Part shown: piece after piece, positions 6,075-44,452 of the stretch
Position numbering within the stretch: position 1 is the stretch's first letter
Layout of the letters: each line of letters opens with the position of its first letter
Made by a program: the position numbers and the translations under genes
Sequence record: NC_048668.1
DNA length: 64,000 nucleotides
Strand: one strand, 5' to 3'
The notes under the pieces: model-generated
What the model saw: only the letters and a program-made list of their open reading frames with translations
What the model was told of the DNA's origin: nothing
Databases searched by the model: none

Positions 6075-6129
6075 TCGTTAATAACCAGTTAAACTCTCTA
6101 AACCAAACTCAATTAACAAGGAATTAAAA

Positions 6130-6711
6130 ATGTCTACTATCATCAATACTCCAAACAACAAAACTGTTTCTAACCGCTTCTTCTACTACACCGTTGCAGC
6201 CTTCGCTGTCTTCGCAACCATCGTTGGCATATCCGAAAACGATACCGTCAACCTGATCGCTTGGGTTGTTCTCATGGTCGTCAACGTTAACCTGGCGCAT
6301 TGCGATAACGAAGAAGTAAAAGCTGCCGGTTACAAACCAACTACCGTCTGGCTGAATATGCTGCTCTCTCCTATCGGCTGGGGTATCGTTCGTGTTATCC
6401 GTACCCGTAACGGCGGCTTCCATAACTTCAAAGGCATCATCGGTTATGTTGTCGGTGTTCTGGCAGTATTGATGGTTCTGGGCCTGGCCACTGAGCCTAA
6501 CGAAGACGAAGCAATTGCAACCCGCACTTGTGAAATCATCAACGAACAAACTGAGCCATTCTTCCTGGAAGGCGTTAAATGCGATCACGCTGAGTTCGAC
6601 AGCAAACCAGGCAAATACACCTGGGTCATTAACGTGTACAAAACCGATGGTGACGTTACCATGGTAAACGCACGCTACGACGCTAAGAACGATATGATCA
6701 CCGTGTTCTAA
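6130..6711 (+). CDS. Membrane protein with soluble C-terminal domain
   Basis: AAGGA RBS; several hydrophobic segments; strong high-expression codon bias. Confidence 0.75.
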   Translation: MSTIINTPNNKTVSNRFFYYTVAAFAVFATIVGISENDTVNLIAWVVLMVVNVNLAHCDNEEVKAAGYKPTTVWLNMLLSPIGWGIVRVIRTRNGGFHNFKGIIGYVVGVLAVLMVLGLATEPNEDEAIATRTCEIINEQTEPFFLEGVKCDHAEFDSKPGKYTWVINVYKTDGDVTMVNARYDAKNDMITVF

Positions 6712-28151: not shown

Positions 28152-28436
28152 ATGGCAAGGTCAGTTCTCTTTATCGCAATTCCGGTTATCATTGTCACCG
28201 CTGTTGGTTATTACCAAAACCTCACTGCAAACGCCAAGATCGCATCGGAGATCGAATCGATGGGTTACAAAGGCATTAACTTGATGCAGCGTACCATGGA
28301 CTGCTCAAGAGGTTATAGCGGGGAGATCTTCACCGGGACTAGCGAAAAGAACGAACGTGTCTATGCAGCTTTCTGCACAGCAGATAACCAACCTCCGTTC
28401 ATCGAGGTGATTCGTAACTCTGGAGAAATAAAGTGA
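28152..28436 (+). CDS. Exported/membrane-anchored protein
   Basis: N-terminal hydrophobic segment; two Cys. Confidence 0.65.
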   Translation: MARSVLFIAIPVIIVTAVGYYQNLTANAKIASEIESMGYKGINLMQRTMDCSRGYSGEIFTGTSEKNERVYAAFCTADNQPPFIEVIRNSGEIK

Positions 28437-28717
28437 AGAAGATTTTAGTTCTGTTATCGTTAGCATTCTTGACTGCCTGTAACCCTGACCCTACTCAGAC
28501 AATGGCAGTAGTTCCTGCATCCGAGTTTACCAAGGATGGTATCGCTGTCGTTCAGGTCGGCATCTTTAAAGATGAGCTGGCTTACGGTAATCGCCGTGGT
28601 GTTTACCGGATAAAGGACCAACGTACCGGTAAAGAGTACATCGGCGTATCCGGAATTGGTATCAGTGAAGTCAGTAACCACAGCAACGGCAAACAGTCCA
28701 TTGAGGATGAACGTTAA
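28433..28717 (+). CDS. Putative lipoprotein
   Basis: MKKILVLLSLAFLTAC lipobox. Confidence 0.7.
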   Translation: MKKILVLLSLAFLTACNPDPTQTMAVVPASEFTKDGIAVVQVGIFKDELAYGNRRGVYRIKDQRTGKEYIGVSGIGISEVSNHSNGKQSIEDER

Positions 28718-37480: not shown

Positions 37481-38723
37481 ATGTTAGAGTCAATAATGAC
37501 TGTGCTTGAGAAATTCAACCACATTGCAAAAGACAACATGTTACTTAGCGTGTTGTTTGGCGGCTCTGGGGTGATGTTGATTACAGCGGTGGTGAAGGGC
37601 TTACCATCTAAGTTATTCAACTTCTTCTTACACCACCTCACTACACGCATCAACATGGAGACAATCTTCAACTATACGCACTTTTCTAACTTTGAAGAGT
37701 GGTTCTCCAGTAGTAAGTGGGTTCGCTACGTACGTTCGGTACAGCCGTCAGTAACGGGTAACGGCAAACAGTCAGCCGGGATGGGGACTCATTGGTTCTT
37801 CTATAAATGCAGACCTGTTAAGTTCACTAAGAAGATGGTGCAGAGCAATGGGTCGTAATGATGGGTCAATGGATATGGAATTCCGATTCTTTACCCGTAA
37901 CCATGCACTCATTGATCAGTTCTTTGCCGAGATATCTCGGTCGCCAGATCGTAACACGCACACGTTCATCTCAGAACAAGGTGCAGGTGCCTCGGTTAAG
38001 ATACCCAGTCGAGATCTCGATACGGTAGTTATCGATGCTGAGACTAAATCGAAGATCATCACTACAATTGATAACTTCAGGAAGAACCGTCAGTGGTACT
38101 ACGACCGTGGTATTCCTTATAAGTTAGTCATCCTTCTTCACGGTTTGCCTGGTACGGGTAAGACGTCATTGATCCGTAGTATCGCAGGTTATCTGAAGAT
38201 GGATATCATGGTGTTCGACCCACGTCGCGACCCTTACAACATTGGCGCCAATCTACGCGGATTGTGGCCAGGGTACATTGGAGTTATCGAGGACATTAAC
38301 GCCAAACCAATGTCTAAGGACTTAGCGATTGAGCGGGAACCAGATCCTTTCTCTCCAGTAAACTCCCCTGCATCCAATAAGCCGCCTATCAACGAAGTTG
38401 ACATGAAGTCCATGTTGAACGCGTTGGACGGGCCAGTGCCGTTGGACGATAAGATCATCTTCATTACGTCTAACCACGTAGAGGAGTTGGATCCTACCTT
38501 TATTCGGCCAGGTCGTATTGATCTTTCCATCGAGATCAAACCACTGACCTACAAGGAAGTTAATGAGTTCAGTATCCTTAATTACGGCCGTGGCATTTCT
38601 GATGATGAGTCATATGGTACAATCACCGGTGCTGCACTTCAACAGATCATGTTGGATAACATCGGTGATTTCGATGGCTTCTACAAAACACTTAAAACAA
38701 AACTTTCCGAAGAGGTAGCGTAA
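37481..38723 (+). CDS. BCS1-like AAA+ ATPase with N-terminal membrane anchor, about 413 aa, split at GGG 37850-37852
   Basis: 5' part has a TM segment and GMGTHWFFYK.R (BCS1_N-like). 3' part has WYYDRGIPYK..ILLHGLPGTGKTS, EDI, LNALDG and ITSNH.E.LDP..IRPGRID. Confidence 0.8.
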
Positions 38724-39157
38724 TGTTTTCACCCATGTTCGAGATGATCGGTAACTTCCTCAACGGTTGTCCTCGGTCTTTCATCACTACCGACGGTTCA
38801 GTGACGCTGGAAGAAATGAAAGGGTGGTTTGGTAACGGTTACAATATCGTTGTTTTTACTCCCCCGGAAGATACTTCCAAATCACGTTCTTACCTCGCTA
38901 AGATGTTTGAGCAGGACGCCGCTGAATTAGAAAGCGAAGAAGGTGAGAATAAGATTTACTTCTACGAGTCAGAGGAAACCGACAGCTATCTGGATATGGC
39001 TATTCTGGTTTCCACCGACGCGTTGGTTGAGTTCTCTCGTTACATTGATGTTGACGACAAGAATTTCAGCTACATCAACGCTACCATCAAAAAGTGCCGT
39101 GGTTACGAATCTTACGGTAAAGTCACGCTACAACTACCAATGGGGTATCCGCTGTGA
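38723..39157 (+). CDS. Hypothetical protein
   Basis: TAATG coupling; 144 aa. Confidence 0.7.
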   Translation: MFSPMFEMIGNFLNGCPRSFITTDGSVTLEEMKGWFGNGYNIVVFTPPEDTSKSRSYLAKMFEQDAAELESEEGENKIYFYESEETDSYLDMAILVSTDALVEFSRYIDVDDKNFSYINATIKKCRGYESYGKVTLQLPMGYPL

Positions 39158-39546
39158 TCGAATACGTTATCTCAGAAACACATATCACTGACAAGACAAA
39201 GAAACGCCTGAGTGAACAACTCGGCGAAGGTCGGGAGATTACTGCGGTTCTCTCCTTCGATCAGTCTTACGTCATGGAACGTAAAGGCCCTGACTTTTCT
39301 GGTCTGCTGGTAATCACCGGGCCACTGCTGGAATACCATATCTTCCGTAAGGTCGGTATGAAGTTCGTTCATGCAGGAGCCATGAAAACCTCCATTTCAA
39401 CCGTGTCGCTCAGCGATGATAACTACAACGCGATGGCCGGTCTGGGAGTGGAGGATAAACTCACCGCTCTTTCCCATAAGGTCAAAGAGCTCCACCCACA
39501 TATCCTCGCTTACTTTAAGACGGAGGAAATGAAAGGAGTACTCTGA
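39154..39546 (+). CDS. Hypothetical protein
   Basis: GTGA overlap; 130 aa. Confidence 0.65.
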   Translation: MIEYVISETHITDKTKKRLSEQLGEGREITAVLSFDQSYVMERKGPDFSGLLVITGPLLEYHIFRKVGMKFVHAGAMKTSISTVSLSDDNYNAMAGLGVEDKLTALSHKVKELHPHILAYFKTEEMKGVL

Positions 39547-39935
39547 TGAAGAAGTTGATCATCGGCGTTGTTGCGTTGATGCTGGCGGTTTCGTTCAGCA
39601 TCTCGTTTAGCTACGCAAAAGATCCGGTCGTGTTCCGTGAGGGCTATATCTTCGAAGCTATATTCACGGGTGACGTAGTCCACGTTAAAACTTTTGACTC
39701 CGGGGTTAATTGTACTTACGATAGTCGGGTTGATAACGTAGATGAGTTCGAAGGTAAATACTACACGATGCGGTACAGCTGCTGGATCATTCCTGCCAAG
39801 CACTTTAACAGCGTTCATCTGACTTACTACTACGACTCGGACACCTTTAATCTGATCTATCGGAGAAACTCGAAAGGAGAGATCATTTACGAAGGGATTT
39901 GGGACGCTAAGGATGTGCTCGATGTACGCCAGTAA
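39546..39935 (+). CDS. Secreted two-cysteine protein (paralogue family member 1)
   Basis: Sec signal ending SYA; NC...GKYY..RYSC. Confidence 0.7.
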   Translation: MKKLIIGVVALMLAVSFSISFSYAKDPVVFREGYIFEAIFTGDVVHVKTFDSGVNCTYDSRVDNVDEFEGKYYTMRYSCWIIPAKHFNSVHLTYYYDSDTFNLIYRRNSKGEIIYEGIWDAKDVLDVRQ

Positions 39936-40308
39936 AGCCCTCCTTGATCTGGAAGGGATACAGGTGCTGCAGGTTGACAAGGAAGTCAATCTACGTACGC
40001 TAGTGAGCTATTACCCCGTACCTGACGCTCGGGATATTCTCCGCGCAATAGGTCACCCTTGGGTGGAAATAAAGAGCGACTATCGATCCATCTTCTACTG
40101 CACGCTACGCAAAGGTACAGACCAGAAGCGGTCGTTCATGGATTCGGCTAAGGTGAATAGTTTCTTGAGCAAAGCCAAGGTCGAGGGTAAGGGTGCATTA
40201 CTCATCGTCCGCGGTTCACTGGTCTATTCAGAGGCCAAGGAAGGCGTTAAACGTAAAGTGCGAGTCTACCGTAATCAACTGGGAAATATAACGGAAGTGC
40301 TATTGTGA
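39922..40308 (+). CDS. Hypothetical protein
   Basis: AAGGA RBS before ATG 39922. Confidence 0.65.
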   Translation: MYASKALLDLEGIQVLQVDKEVNLRTLVSYYPVPDARDILRAIGHPWVEIKSDYRSIFYCTLRKGTDQKRSFMDSAKVNSFLSKAKVEGKGALLIVRGSLVYSEAKEGVKRKVRVYRNQLGNITEVLL

Positions 40309-40577
40309 TGAAACCTTCAAGTAAGAGTATTATCATTTCGTGGGTGGTGGCGATCATGTATATTCTTTACATCGTTGCCCTGATGGTATCGCCATTACAT
40401 TGGCTACCGTGGATCATCGTTGTTCGAGTGACTCCTTTTATTGGTATTTGGCTCTACGATCGTTACAAGGGAAACAAATCCCACGGGTTCTTCTCATACG
40501 TGCTTATGCCGCAAGGTATACTGTCCATAGCGATCTTAAACTTCAAACATGATGTCAAGTACGTCTTTGGCAAATAA
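40305..40577 (+). CDS. Membrane protein
   Basis: Three hydrophobic segments. Confidence 0.65.
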   Translation: MMKPSSKSIIISWVVAIMYILYIVALMVSPLHWLPWIIVVRVTPFIGIWLYDRYKGNKSHGFFSYVLMPQGILSIAILNFKHDVKYVFGK

Positions 40578-40588
40578 ACGCACAGAAG

Positions 40589-40616
40589 CTCTCCTAGGGA
40601 TCATTCCCTAGGAGAG
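40589..40616 (+). terminator. Terminator hairpin
   Basis: CTCTCCTAGGGA / TCCCTAGGAGAG. Confidence 0.7.
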
Positions 40617-40627
40617 TCCTATTATAT

Positions 40628-40659
40628 CCATTTCCAATTTTTTTGGTGTCTATATAACC
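40628..40659 (+). repeat. 32-bp exact repeat copy A = early-promoter-like motif copy 5
   Basis: CCATTTCCAATTTTTTTGGTGTCTATATAACC, identical to 62496-62527. Confidence 0.9.
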
Positions 40660-40715
40660 AGCGCGAAGGTCTATAGTAAAGCCTTCTTTTCAAAACATTA
40701 CAAAAGGGAAAACTT

Positions 40716-41234
40716 ATGTTAAAGCGAGTAAAGTCCTATTTACTTGGGGTTATCAACAACTACCGAGTAGATAAGGCTATGAAGGAGGACATGGACGGGA
40801 GGGCGTGTTACGTGGTAGGTATCACGTTAGATCGTTTTTGGGAGGAGCCTGAGTTAAAGTTGTTTAATAAAATACATTTAGACGACTTAACCATGACCAT
40901 CAAAGATCTGTCTCCTGAGGAGATCGTAGATAAATCCATGTTTCTCTATAACCTATTCTCTAAAGCCTACCAAAGCAACTTTGTGAAGCTTCTGGCAATA
41001 GGTACTATCATCTACACTTTCCCGAAACAGTCACTTATTCTACTAATACTTTCAGCGTTGATTTCATTCTACATAATGCTGGTTAAGGAACGTAGATTGA
41101 TCACTATCGACTTAGTCATGAAACACGAGCATAAAGAGTTGGACGACCTAACTCGTCCAACTCTGGTTATGTGCTTTAAATCACTAGTCGTTCGGTTACT
41201 ACCTAAGATAAAGCGGAGGTTAAACATCAGTTAA
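40716..41234 (+). CDS. AT-rich hypothetical protein with hydrophobic segment
   Basis: AAAGGG RBS; directly behind the 32-bp repeat; many TTA/CTA/ATA codons. Confidence 0.65.
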   Translation: MLKRVKSYLLGVINNYRVDKAMKEDMDGRACYVVGITLDRFWEEPELKLFNKIHLDDLTMTIKDLSPEEIVDKSMFLYNLFSKAYQSNFVKLLAIGTIIYTFPKQSLILLILSALISFYIMLVKERRLITIDLVMKHEHKELDDLTRPTLVMCFKSLVVRLLPKIKRRLNIS

Positions 41235-41326
41235 ACCAACAAGGGGAGCTTAGGGAATCGGAAGTTTCTTAGGCTCTCCTCATAACAATACTTTATACCT
41301 AAAATTTTACAAATGGAGATCTAATA

Positions 41327-41647
41327 ATGAAAACAATCATTACCGTACTAACTACTGTTCTTATTGCAACTGTACCTTTCCTTCCTAAAGCGGAAGCAAG
41401 CAACGTCTACCATACCGACAAGGGCGTTACATTCACCATTGATGGTAAGTTAGCAGAAATCGAGCAGAATGGTAAAGTCACCAAGTGCGCTTTGGTAATC
41501 AGTAAAGATGCTACCTCTGCCTGGAAATGCAGCAACGGCAAGCAGCTCTGGATTCGTAACAAGCCGGAAAGTGAACTGATCACGTTCGCTATCTTCGATC
41601 AGAAAGACGACTACCCGGACTTCATTGATTCGGTTCTGAAGAAATAA
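41327..41647 (+). CDS. Secreted two-cysteine protein (member 2)
   Basis: Signal peptide ending AEA; KC...WKC. Confidence 0.7.
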   Translation: MKTIITVLTTVLIATVPFLPKAEASNVYHTDKGVTFTIDGKLAEIEQNGKVTKCALVISKDATSAWKCSNGKQLWIRNKPESELITFAIFDQKDDYPDFIDSVLKK

Positions 41648-41658
41648 CCAAAAAATAC

Positions 41659-41676
41659 GGAGGGGAAATCCCCTCC
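41659..41676 (+). terminator. Terminator hairpin
   Basis: GGAGGGG-AAAT-CCCCTCC. Confidence 0.7.
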
Positions 41677-41722
41677 TTTAATAACTAAATACAAACACTT
41701 TAAACTTAAAAAGGAAATAACA

Positions 41723-42175
41723 ATGAACCCGATCCAACACCTCAAGAAATTCGTTAAGTCAGACGTAGAAGGTCATGCTTTCATCGCGCTGTCTGATTCA
41801 CCTTTCCAGACCGCAATTGTAAAATGCATTCTTGGGAACGAATTCGGCGAAGCGTTTGAATTGGCCAAGGCTAATAAAAACTCATTCAAATTCTTCGAAA
41901 TAAAAGAACAGAAATATGCCGTAGTGGTGGCCAACGAATACGACTTCACAACCTACATGGACTTACCTGGACTAGTGAACCTGGAAACTGAACTGGGAAC
42001 TCGCGTAATCGTCTTTGGAGAGTATGCCCAAGGCGAAGTGCTGGGTAACCTGTTAATCGCTGTTGGGGCTTCCTGGTACGGTTTTACGGCGCCATGGAAA
42101 CATCACAACGATGCTCTCCATTATGTCACTTCCAGATATGCCGGTTGTGAAATGGCTCAGTGCAAAATTGCTTAA
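41723..42175 (+). CDS. Hypothetical protein
   Basis: AAGGA RBS; 150 aa. Confidence 0.7.
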   Translation: MNPIQHLKKFVKSDVEGHAFIALSDSPFQTAIVKCILGNEFGEAFELAKANKNSFKFFEIKEQKYAVVVANEYDFTTYMDLPGLVNLETELGTRVIVFGEYAQGEVLGNLLIAVGASWYGFTAPWKHHNDALHYVTSRYAGCEMAQCKIA

Positions 42176-42183
42176 CAAACTTT

Positions 42184-42206
42184 ACTAGGGGACATGTTCC
42201 CCTAGT
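42184..42206 (+). terminator. Terminator hairpin
   Basis: ACTAGGGGA / TCCCCTAGT. Confidence 0.65.
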
Positions 42207-42244
42207 TTATTCTCACTTGTCCCAATCTTAATTAGGAAAACCAA

Positions 42245-42604
42245 ATGAAACTCATCCACGCTATCTTCGCTATCGCTCTTCTGACTTTTGCTGGTTCTGC
42301 TTATGCTAACAACTATCGTCTGTACGATGACTACAGCAATGAGATTACTCTTCGCGGTAACCTGCTGAAAATTAAGAACGACGCACACGGCGGTGTTACT
42401 CGTTGTACCTTCAACGAAAACATCACGGGTAAAGAAAGTGATGGTACAACTTACCGTGGCGCTAACTACCTTTGTGGCGGTAAGATGTGGGCTACCTTCA
42501 CCACTAACCAAGAACGTCACACTGTAGAGGTTAGCGTCTTCCTGTACAAAGATACTCTCTACACCAAAGAACTGCCGCTGGCTGCTCTTGAACTCATCGA
42601 CTAA
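42245..42604 (+). CDS. Secreted two-cysteine protein (member 3)
   Basis: Signal peptide ending AYA; RC...YLC. Confidence 0.75.
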   Translation: MKLIHAIFAIALLTFAGSAYANNYRLYDDYSNEITLRGNLLKIKNDAHGGVTRCTFNENITGKESDGTTYRGANYLCGGKMWATFTTNQERHTVEVSVFLYKDTLYTKELPLAALELID

Positions 42605-42622
42605 TCAATAAGGCAATCTGAC

Positions 42623-42964
42623 ATGAACCGTTTTATCATCGTATTACTGGCTTTGATTTCTTTTAGCGCTTATGCTGACACCACGACCCTTAGTGAGGGA
42701 ACTGACTTTAATGCCGTGATCGGTGATAAAACCTCAGTCGTTAATTACGACGACCAGACCCTGTATTGTGAATTAGAGAAGACCAGCCGGGAACTCGATT
42801 CAGAATACGGCAAGTATCAACTGAAACTCTATAGCTGTGGCGCCAACATCATGTTCGCCCACAAGACCTACGACAGCCAACCTTTCACGCAAGCTATCAT
42901 CGGTGACAAGGCAACCAATGTAGTTTACTACAGCAACTACTTCAATAAGGAAACAACTAAATGA
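42623..42964 (+). CDS. Secreted two-cysteine protein (member 4)
   Basis: Signal peptide ending AYA; YC...GKY..KLYSC. Confidence 0.75.
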   Translation: MNRFIIVLLALISFSAYADTTTLSEGTDFNAVIGDKTSVVNYDDQTLYCELEKTSRELDSEYGKYQLKLYSCGANIMFAHKTYDSQPFTQAIIGDKATNVVYYSNYFNKETTK

Positions 42965-43326
42965 AATTCGTTATCGCGTTATTCGTAGCCGTACTGTCCC
43001 TGGCGTCTTTCTCTGCCAATGCAAGTCTGATCCATATGAGCGATGCACCTGAATACGATTTCGTAGTAGGTGACACTACTGCTCGGGTCAAAAACCTGCA
43101 AACCAATAAAACCTCTCGCTGTACGCTGATGTACAATGACAACGGTATCGATAAAGATAACCTAGTCTACGTCGTTAGCTTCTTCCAATGCGATGCAGGA
43201 TTCGAGCTGATGGCCAAGATCACAACCGAGAACGGCAACATCATCGTAGCCATGATTCGTAACGGTGCCAATAAAGAGTTCTATCGCAAGTACGCTCCTA
43301 AAGGTACTTGGGTTGTCATGAACTAA
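42961..43326 (+). CDS. Secreted two-cysteine protein (member 5)
   Basis: Signal peptide ending ANA; RC...FQC. Confidence 0.75.
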   Translation: MKFVIALFVAVLSLASFSANASLIHMSDAPEYDFVVGDTTARVKNLQTNKTSRCTLMYNDNGIDKDNLVYVVSFFQCDAGFELMAKITTENGNIIVAMIRNGANKEFYRKYAPKGTWVVMN

Positions 43327-43330
43327 ACCG

Positions 43331-43358
43331 ATCCCTCTACCTATCCGGGTAGGGGGAT
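43331..43358 (+). terminator. Terminator hairpin
   Basis: ATCCCTCTACC / GGTAGGGGGAT followed by TTATTTT. Confidence 0.65.
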
Positions 43359-43454
43359 TATTTTACGTATTACTCTTTTATTTTTTATGAACGCGAAACG
43401 TTTCTGAACTCCCCCGTTTCAGAAACCTCTTAATCTCCCGCTAAGGTGGTACAG

Positions 43455-44300: not shown

Positions 44301-44335
44301 TGAACATTTAATAAAACATATTGGAGTTTTTAAAG

Positions 44336-44452
44336 ATGGGTGATTTCTTGGACTTTATCATGGGTGCTATTCTTTGTTCTGCTGCTGCGGGGGAATTGGA
44401 CGAAGAAGAGGAAGAGCTGGAAGTTGAAGAAGTAGAGGATGAAGACGATTAA
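44336..44452 (+). CDS. Highly acidic 38-aa peptide (not in ORF track)
   Basis: GGAG RBS; MGDFLDFIMGAILCSAAAGELDEEEEELEVEEVEDEDD; lies between a promoter and a terminator. Confidence 0.6.
   Translation: MGDFLDFIMGAILCSAAAGELDEEEEELEVEEVEDEDD

Follow-up and report, generated by a model that had tools for sequence, protein, structure and literature searches.

Five genes for small, probably exported proteins in a Serratia jumbo phage

Serratia phage vB_SmaM_2050HW (hereafter 2050HW; NC_048668 / MF285618) is a jumbo phage of the genus Moabitevirus with a genome of 276,025 bp. We describe here five of its genes, all annotated in RefSeq as 'hypothetical protein', which lie close together on one strand and are predicted to encode small exported proteins with a single pair of cysteines. 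They are contained in a 64,000-nucleotide stretch of NC_048668.1, referred to below as the window, and all coordinates are those of the window unless another record is named (window position 39000 is record position 163000). An original prediction, made from the letters of this stretch alone, had placed five open reading frames (ORFs) of such a family between 39546 and 43326; all five are present on the + strand and encode proteins of 106–129 amino acids. They are named below by the position at which each begins.

39546–39935, + strand: paralogue 1, HWB23_gp195, 129 amino acids; signal peptide at about 39546–39617; long hairpin, C-x22-C, and a few extra residues after the second Cys.
41327–41647, + strand: paralogue 2, HWB23_gp199, 106 amino acids; signal peptide at about 41327–41398; short hairpin, C-x13-C.
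42245–42604, + strand: paralogue 3, HWB23_gp201, 119 amino acids; signal peptide at about 42245–42307; opens a three-gene tandem unit.
42623–42964, + strand: paralogue 4, HWB23_gp202, 113 amino acids; signal peptide at about 42623–42676; its stop overlaps the start of the 42961 gene.
42961–43326, + strand: paralogue 5, HWB23_gp203, 121 amino acids; signal peptide at about 42961–43023; the best conserved member.

The Sec-type signal and the two mature cysteines that had been claimed for these proteins can be seen in each of the five sequences. Every N-terminus has a K/R-containing n-region, a hydrophobic core of 10–15 residues and a small-x-small cleavage motif (S-Y-A in 39546, A-E-A in 41327, A-Y-A in both 42245 and 42623, and A-N-A in 42961), and the mature part of each contains exactly two Cys, with an aromatic residue two positions before the second. 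A signal peptide together with exactly two mature Cys is likewise found in all 23 of the family members that we collected, and neither the five proteins nor any of the 23 has a lipobox. The mature 2050HW proteins have isoelectric points of 4.6 to 6.8. We infer that the five would be exported by Sec, cleaved by signal peptidase and left soluble in the periplasm, and that the two conserved cysteines of each probably form a disulfide.

The five genes form one family

Comparison of the mature parts with phmmer, against a background of 281 ORFs, linked 39546 to 42623 (E = 4e-4), 42623 to 42961 (3e-4) and 42961 to 42245 (9e-3), and left the 41327 protein unlinked to the other four (E about 0.7). Two family profiles were then built with diverged orthologues collected from relatives. 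Scored with the profile of 19 full-length sequences that are not of the 41327 type, 41327 itself gave 3.5e-6 and its orthologues 3e-8 to 8e-5, the first unrelated ORF following at 0.24, and an hhalign comparison of the mature parts aligned the 41327 subfamily profile with that of the rest over 67 columns (probability 92.5, E = 4.7e-7), as against a probability of 0.3 for the reversed-sequence control. A family hidden Markov model (HMM) run over the 1188 six-frame ORFs of the 276-kb genome recovered these five and nothing else, with E-values such as 1.9e-32 for 39546, 1.9e-31 for 42245 and 9e-41 for 42961. The closest paralogue of 42245 is an extra copy, gp271, in the related phage Moabite (3e-5). 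On the basis of the profile matches and the whole-genome scan, the five genes constitute a single paralogous family with exactly five members in 2050HW, and the claim of an expanded family of five is thus borne out by the phmmer links, the profile comparison and the genome-wide HMM.

That the likeness is instead due to chance or to annotation artefact, some of the five not being genes at all, would fit the failure of 41327 to find a significant pairwise match among the other four. Against this stand the profile-profile match of 41327 with its reversed control, the conservation of orthologues in at least nine genomes, the 38 synonymous as against 8 non-synonymous differences that separate the five genes from their Moabite counterparts, and two structural models that are confident and concordant (see below). 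The genome-wide HMM, the synonymous excess and the profile-profile match together refute this reading, to which we give practically no credence, and because of the same 38 to 8 excess the five sequences read as real, constrained coding genes.

Predicted fold and structural neighbors

AlphaFold2 was run on the mature 42623 and 41327 proteins with a 12-sequence family alignment as input. The 42623 model has a mean predicted local distance difference test score (pLDDT) of 81.8 and a predicted template modeling score (pTM) of 0.76, and the 41327 model a mean pLDDT of 94.5 and a pTM of 0.81. Both consist of eight beta-strands in the same order, are free of helix, and place one Cys in strand 4 and the other at the end of strand 5. 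The predicted family fold is accordingly a compact, eight-stranded, antiparallel up-and-down beta-barrel with the Cys pair at the base of the strand 4–5 hairpin, in agreement with the beta-rich mature parts that had been read from the sequences.

Foldseek searches of the PDB with the 41327 model gave, as the best full-length match, the Neisseria meningitidis protein ACP (5my7; probability 0.99, template modeling score normalized to the query (TMq) 0.59 and to the target (TMt) 0.53, E = 0.19), along with N. gonorrhoeae ACP (6gq4; TMq 0.57, probability 0.97) and Brucella PliC (4mir_C; TMq 0.54). These three are all lysozyme inhibitors, and the other rows for 41327 are parts of larger calycin-type barrels. 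The 42623 model matched YodA/ZinT, FABP, Tp0751 and a Bacteroides protein of unknown function (TMq 0.45–0.59). Among the predicted viral structures of BFVD, the same model matched the extra Moabite paralogue gp271 (TMq 0.86) and uncharacterized proteins of the Escherichia phages Mt1B1_P17 and nieznany, Klebsiella phage Menlow and Erwinia phage Frozen (TMq 0.68–0.75). Given these matches in Escherichia, Klebsiella and Erwinia phages, the modeled fold is more widespread than the sequence family among virulent phages of Enterobacterales.

The cysteine-bracketed hairpin

Among the 23 members the spacing of the two cysteines is C-x22-C in 18, C-x13-C, the 41327 type, in four, x23 in one and x25 in one. 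The orthologue of 41327 in the metagenomic relative L009 carries the long form, so hairpin length has changed within the 41327 lineage. Conservation across the 18 long-type proteins is highest in the hairpin and lowest in strands 1, 3 and 6; the idea of a hypervariable Cys-bracketed hairpin was therefore rejected. In the mature numbering of 42623, the conserved positions are Cys31 (18/18), Gly39 (14/18), Asp41 (16/18), Tyr47 (16/18), Tyr/Phe52 (18/18) and Cys54 (18/18), and no His or other residue of catalytic appearance is conserved among these 18 proteins. The long-type signature is missing from 41327, the short-hairpin copy.

Distribution, copy number and selection

A profile search of 1.84 billion representative proteins (E up to 1e-3) gave 17 matches, of which about ten are true and all of these in phage contexts; long multi-stretch matches among the 17 are low-complexity repeats and were discarded. 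No bacterial sequence relative was found among these representatives or in word-indexed protein searches, which returned phage relatives only. A scan of IMG/VR recovered 2050HW alone, and a scan of GTDB at one genome per species, with the copies from lambda-like phages described below as query, returned no relative. By these sequence searches the family is rare and restricted to phages. The numbers of copies per genome are as follows.

Five copies: 2050HW, BUCT660, Yaphecito, Kodama and ParM-25.
Six copies: Moabite, the extra copy lying between the orthologues of 42245 and 42623.
Six copies: Totoro.
Four copies each: the metagenomic relatives L007 and L009.
At least four copies: the metagenomic relative L008.
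Two copies: the Klebsiella jumbo phage KpLz-2_45 (Siatvirus).

Two genes next to the Siatvirus copies (L011:4988-5287 and 6092-6433) were considered and rejected as members, having neither a signal peptide nor a Cys pair. Outside these phages, one copy is found in each of two lambda-like metagenomic phages, L003 and L005 (GpA terminase, portal_2). There it is encoded on the opposite strand, as a lone cargo gene with the terminase on one side and a variable cargo region on the other. The copy in L003, the contig that was scanned, has promoter-like and terminator-like sites of its own, and the product of a neighboring gene contains an LprI lysozyme-inhibitor domain, which scored 28.3 bits (Pfam cut-off 22). 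A blastn search of the lambda-like contig against known phages gave no match. The cargo next to the family copy consists in L003 (8928-9692) of this LprI-domain protein and an alpha/beta hydrolase, and in L005 (8438-9043) of an LRAT/NlpC-P60-type protein.

The original prediction had further proposed diversifying selection, which is not seen among close relatives. Against five close relatives, the ratio of the proportions of non-synonymous to synonymous changes (pN/pS) is 0.06–0.14 for the family genes and 0.05–0.15 for the flanking genes; positive selection among close relatives is thereby ruled out, and all five genes are under purifying selection. At longer range, identity to Totoro falls to 36% for 41327, 29% for 42245 and 21% for 42623, as compared with 50% for 39546, 69% for 42961 and 45–80% for the flanking genes, so that three of the five diverge far beyond their neighbors, and the copy number shifts; the 39546 orthologue in L009 is 54% identical. 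Over such distances, part of the array is either fast-evolving or replaced, with turnover of copies among distant relatives.

Earlier annotation and relation to known inhibitors

The original prediction had regarded the family as undescribed. A literature search found no paper that discusses it, the Moabite genome announcement does not mention the family genes (PMC6639629), and four of the five window genes are 'hypothetical' everywhere; the fifth, 41327, already has labeled orthologues. In the Moabite record gp268, the orthologue of 41327, and the extra copy gp271 are called 'putative lysozyme inhibitor' with reference to an HHpred match to 5MY7, which was not reproduced here, and the 41327 orthologues of BUCT660 and Yaphecito are labeled 'putative lysozyme inhibitor' and 'putative lysosome inhibitor', respectively.

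In MliC and PliC an eight-stranded barrel carries a disulfide that links strands 1 and 8, an SxSGAxY motif on the loop between strands 4 and 5 and a YxxxTKG motif on strand 6; ACP retains the fold and the strand 1–8 disulfide (Cys38-Cys121) without these motifs (PMC5507604). In the known inhibitors it is loop 4, between strands 4 and 5, that inserts into the active site of the lysozyme (PMC5507604). The phage proteins resemble the periplasmic MliC/PliC proteins in their predicted location and in their predicted barrel, as in the match of 41327 to Brucella PliC, and in that their conserved hairpin occupies the same strand 4–5 place as the motif loop. They differ from MliC, a lipoprotein, in lacking a lipobox. 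With Neisseria ACP they share small size, a signal peptide, the (here predicted) eight-stranded antiparallel barrel, one cysteine pair and the absence of the MliC/PliC motifs; ACP is, however, a bacterial surface protein that acts on host c-type lysozyme, whereas the role of the phage proteins is a proposal. The comparison with MliC/Pli-type inhibitors made in the original prediction thus stands insofar as the best structural match of 41327 is ACP/PliC and the GenBank labels agree with it, and fails as regards motifs, disulfide position and Pfam (see below). Because the motifs are absent, the cysteines are placed differently and no Pfam or PDB sequence match was found, we file the family as neither MliC/PliC nor ACP, and regard it as a separate family on a scaffold like theirs.

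Two further systems offer parallels. T4 Spackle (gp61.3) is a small periplasmic protein with a cleaved signal and one disulfide, which a lytic phage exports as an inhibitor of the tail lysozyme of superinfecting phages (PMC7677548). The phage family resembles it in consisting of small lytic-phage proteins with a signal sequence and one Cys pair, and, if the analogy is sound, might have a similar periplasmic role in superinfection; Spackle is a single-copy alpha-helical bundle, whereas the family is multi-copy and all-beta in the models, and the two are not homologous. As to homology with gp61.3, the family gave no PDB sequence match. In Pantoea, type VI secretion islands contain signal-peptide ACP-like and LprI proteins in orphan-immunity arrays proposed to act against peptidoglycan-hydrolase effectors (PMC9796082). 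Compared by description, these too are tandem small signal-peptide proteins, some of them ACP-like by HHpred, and they differ in that the phage genes have no accompanying effector gene. No bacterial homologue beside a cognate effector was seen, every recovered context being that of a phage.

Among family collections, phrog_5474, of unknown function, matches four of the five proteins with E-values from 3.9e-7 (42623) to 7.5e-3 (39546 at 4.7e-5) and leaves 41327 unmatched. Scans of the five proteins and all family members against Pfam, NCBIfam and PADLOC returned only noise; the NCBIfam rows for the extra Moabite copy, at 13 bits against cut-offs of 165–494, were set aside as signal-peptide noise.

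Proposed function and alternatives

As candidate roles the original prediction had named superinfection exclusion, receptor masking and the inhibition of periplasmic or competing lytic enzymes. We suggest, tentatively and at somewhat less than an even chance, that the family acts in the periplasm to inhibit peptidoglycan hydrolases, and is a functional counterpart of T4 Spackle built on a PliC/ACP-like scaffold. The proposal is founded on the structural neighbors, the Spackle precedent, the Pantoea parallel and the LprI neighbor in L003. It draws also on the GenBank labels, the correspondence of the hairpin to the inhibitor loop, the place of the genes among nucleotide-metabolism genes and away from virion genes, the lone-cargo copies of the lambda-like phages and the purifying selection on all five genes. 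The proteins would be exported by Sec, oxidized by the host Dsb system and kept soluble in the periplasm, where they would bind tightly to, and inhibit, enzymes that cleave peptidoglycan and have entered this compartment of the infected cell. The targets may be the tail lysozymes of superinfecting phages or the muramidase-type effectors of neighboring bacteria, and each paralogue might cover a different enzyme. As the strand 4–5 hairpin lies at the same topological place as the active-site loop of MliC, PliC, PliI and PliG, it may be the binding element inserted into the active site, with the variable barrel surface setting specificity; the short-hairpin copy 41327, which lacks the hairpin motif, would then bind differently.

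Several observations weigh against such a function. No Foldseek match in the PDB reaches significance (E-values of 0.14 or worse), the fold predictions cover two of the five paralogues (41327 and 42623), and ACP, MliC and PliC are missing from the top 50 rows of the 42623 model. Small eight-stranded barrels are, moreover, a common scaffold with many functions. A regular-expression search found the SxSGAxY and YxxxTKG motifs in none of the 23 members, the Cys pair lies on strands 4 and 5 of both models as opposed to the strand 1–8 disulfide of MliC, PliC and ACP, none of 25 sequences matched Pfam MliC at E up to 5, and searches of all PDB chains with one protein (phmmer) and two profiles gave no match at E up to 10. 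No gene for a target enzyme lies next to the five genes.

Of the other functions to be weighed, the least improbable is that the proteins are periplasmic binders of a component of the host envelope, be it an outer-membrane receptor, a porin or the route of DNA entry, which would exclude superinfecting phages or keep progeny from adsorbing to debris with no lytic enzyme involved. The same signal peptides, the variation in copy number and the position as lone cargo in the lambda-like phages fit this too, a variable barrel surface with a conserved hairpin would suit any binder, and the case that the fold makes for lysozyme inhibition is weak. T5 Llp and other phage proteins known to mask receptors are, on the other hand, lipoproteins, which none of the 23 members is by the lipobox, and the only named structural neighbors that span the whole protein are lysozyme inhibitors; we consider envelope binding unlikely, if still a serious contender. 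A role nearer to the phage's own lysis would be to hold an exported muralytic enzyme, a signal-peptide transglycosylase, inactive in the periplasm until lysis. 2050HW does encode an SLT-like transglycosylase outside the window (gp285/286, with a signal-like N-terminus and a weak SLT match at E = 0.0056), a second 'transglycosylase', gp265, and putative spanins within the window at 28152–28717. The family genes are, however, tens of kb away from the transglycosylase genes, it would be unparsimonious to keep five or six diverged inhibitors when the phage has one or two such enzymes, and the lone opposite-strand cargo copy of the lambda-like phages suggests independence from the Moabitevirus lysis machinery, all of which makes such regulation improbable.

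A further reading, in which the proteins are lipocalin-like carriers comparable to YodA/ZinT or FABP and scavenge or sequester a small ligand or a metal in the periplasm, is prompted by the YodA/ZinT, FABP, avidin-like and lipocalin entries among the top Foldseek rows of both models. When normalized to those larger targets the template modeling scores drop to 0.2–0.3; there is no conserved His or metal-ligand column, conservation being confined to the Cys, Gly, Asp, Tyr and Tyr/Phe of the hairpin; and barrels of 78–119 mature residues are below the size of typical ligand-binding calycins. We hold this to be slightly more improbable than control of the phage's own enzymes.

Returning to the inhibition of peptidoglycan hydrolases, a more ambitious form of the proposal can be put forward, as a rather unlikely one. 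The jumbo phage would carry a periplasmic array resembling orphan immunity genes, made of a new class of inhibitors on the PliC/ACP scaffold in which a disulfide-stapled strand 4–5 hairpin with Gly-x-Asp...Tyr replaces SxSGAxY. The array would shield the wall through a long infection from the tail enzymes of rival phages and from secretion-system effectors, and phage lineages would acquire, lose and replace copies as local enemies change.

If the proposed inhibition of peptidoglycan hydrolases is right, the family would be a second and structurally unrelated answer, and the first multi-copy one, to the challenge that Spackle meets in T4; virulent phages would be seen to build up varied periplasmic inhibitors in the way that bacteria accumulate orphan immunity genes; there would be a new motif class among the lysozyme-inhibitor scaffolds; and 'hypothetical' genes could be named in phages of Serratia, Klebsiella, Pectobacterium, Escherichia and Erwinia that are considered for therapy or biocontrol. 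Should the role prove to be a different one, the family would still be a clean, confidently modeled and phage-restricted fold, secreted by prediction.

Genomic setting and neighboring genes

Since its genome contains a tubulin, PhuZ, and many genes for split RNA-polymerase subunits, 2050HW belongs among the phiKZ-like jumbo phages that form a nucleus. Its family genes are located away from the virion genes, in an extended series of small + strand genes in which those for thymidylate synthase, dihydrofolate reductase, PhoH and thymidine kinase are interspersed. Two terminator-like stem-loops flank the tandem genes 42245, 42623 and 42961 on either side.

42184–42206, + strand: terminator-like stem-loop with a 9-pair stem, directly 5' of the three-gene unit; Moabite has an annotated terminator here.
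43330–43359, + strand: terminator-like stem-loop with a 13-pair stem, directly 3' of paralogue 5 and before PhoH; here, too, Moabite has an annotated terminator.

Further stem-loops at 40588–40617 and near 41659–41676 likewise agree with terminators annotated in Moabite. Sigma-70-like sites are not enriched (8 seen, 9.6 expected), in line with a phage that has polymerases of its own.

Between 41327 and the tandem trio, 41723–42175 encodes a cytoplasmic-looking protein of 150 amino acids that is kept in every Moabitevirus-like relative (43–92% identity) and gave no family match; its 15 non-synonymous and 14 synonymous differences from Moabite make up the largest proportion of non-synonymous changes in the region. 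Directly 5' of 41327, a 172-residue membrane protein (40716–41234) shares just 38% identity with its Moabite counterpart, as compared with 95–100% for the flanking genes, and ParM-25 has no annotated coding sequence (CDS) at this place; the locus is an allele-replacement hot spot within the cluster. The AAA ATPase at 37481–38723 is a single ORF in Moabite and Totoro; in 2050HW it is spread over two ORFs that overlap and lie in different frames, a difference of one frameshift that may be genuine or a sequencing error. The SLT-type transglycosylase noted above (NC_048668 218535-219204) is annotated as two consecutive CDS, gp285 and gp286, and may be split; DNA ligase, DnaB and SbcC are likewise annotated in pieces in the 2050HW record.

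At 28152–28717, two adjacent ORFs of 94 amino acids, both 'hypothetical' in 2050HW, resemble an i-spanin/o-spanin pair, the putative i-spanin with an N-terminal membrane anchor and the putative o-spanin with the lipobox L-T-A-C after its signal peptide; spanins had been called in Moabite only (PMC6639629). Finally, a short ORF after PhoH (44321–44452) ends in a Glu/Asp-rich acidic tail, and a 38-residue protein is annotated there in relatives.

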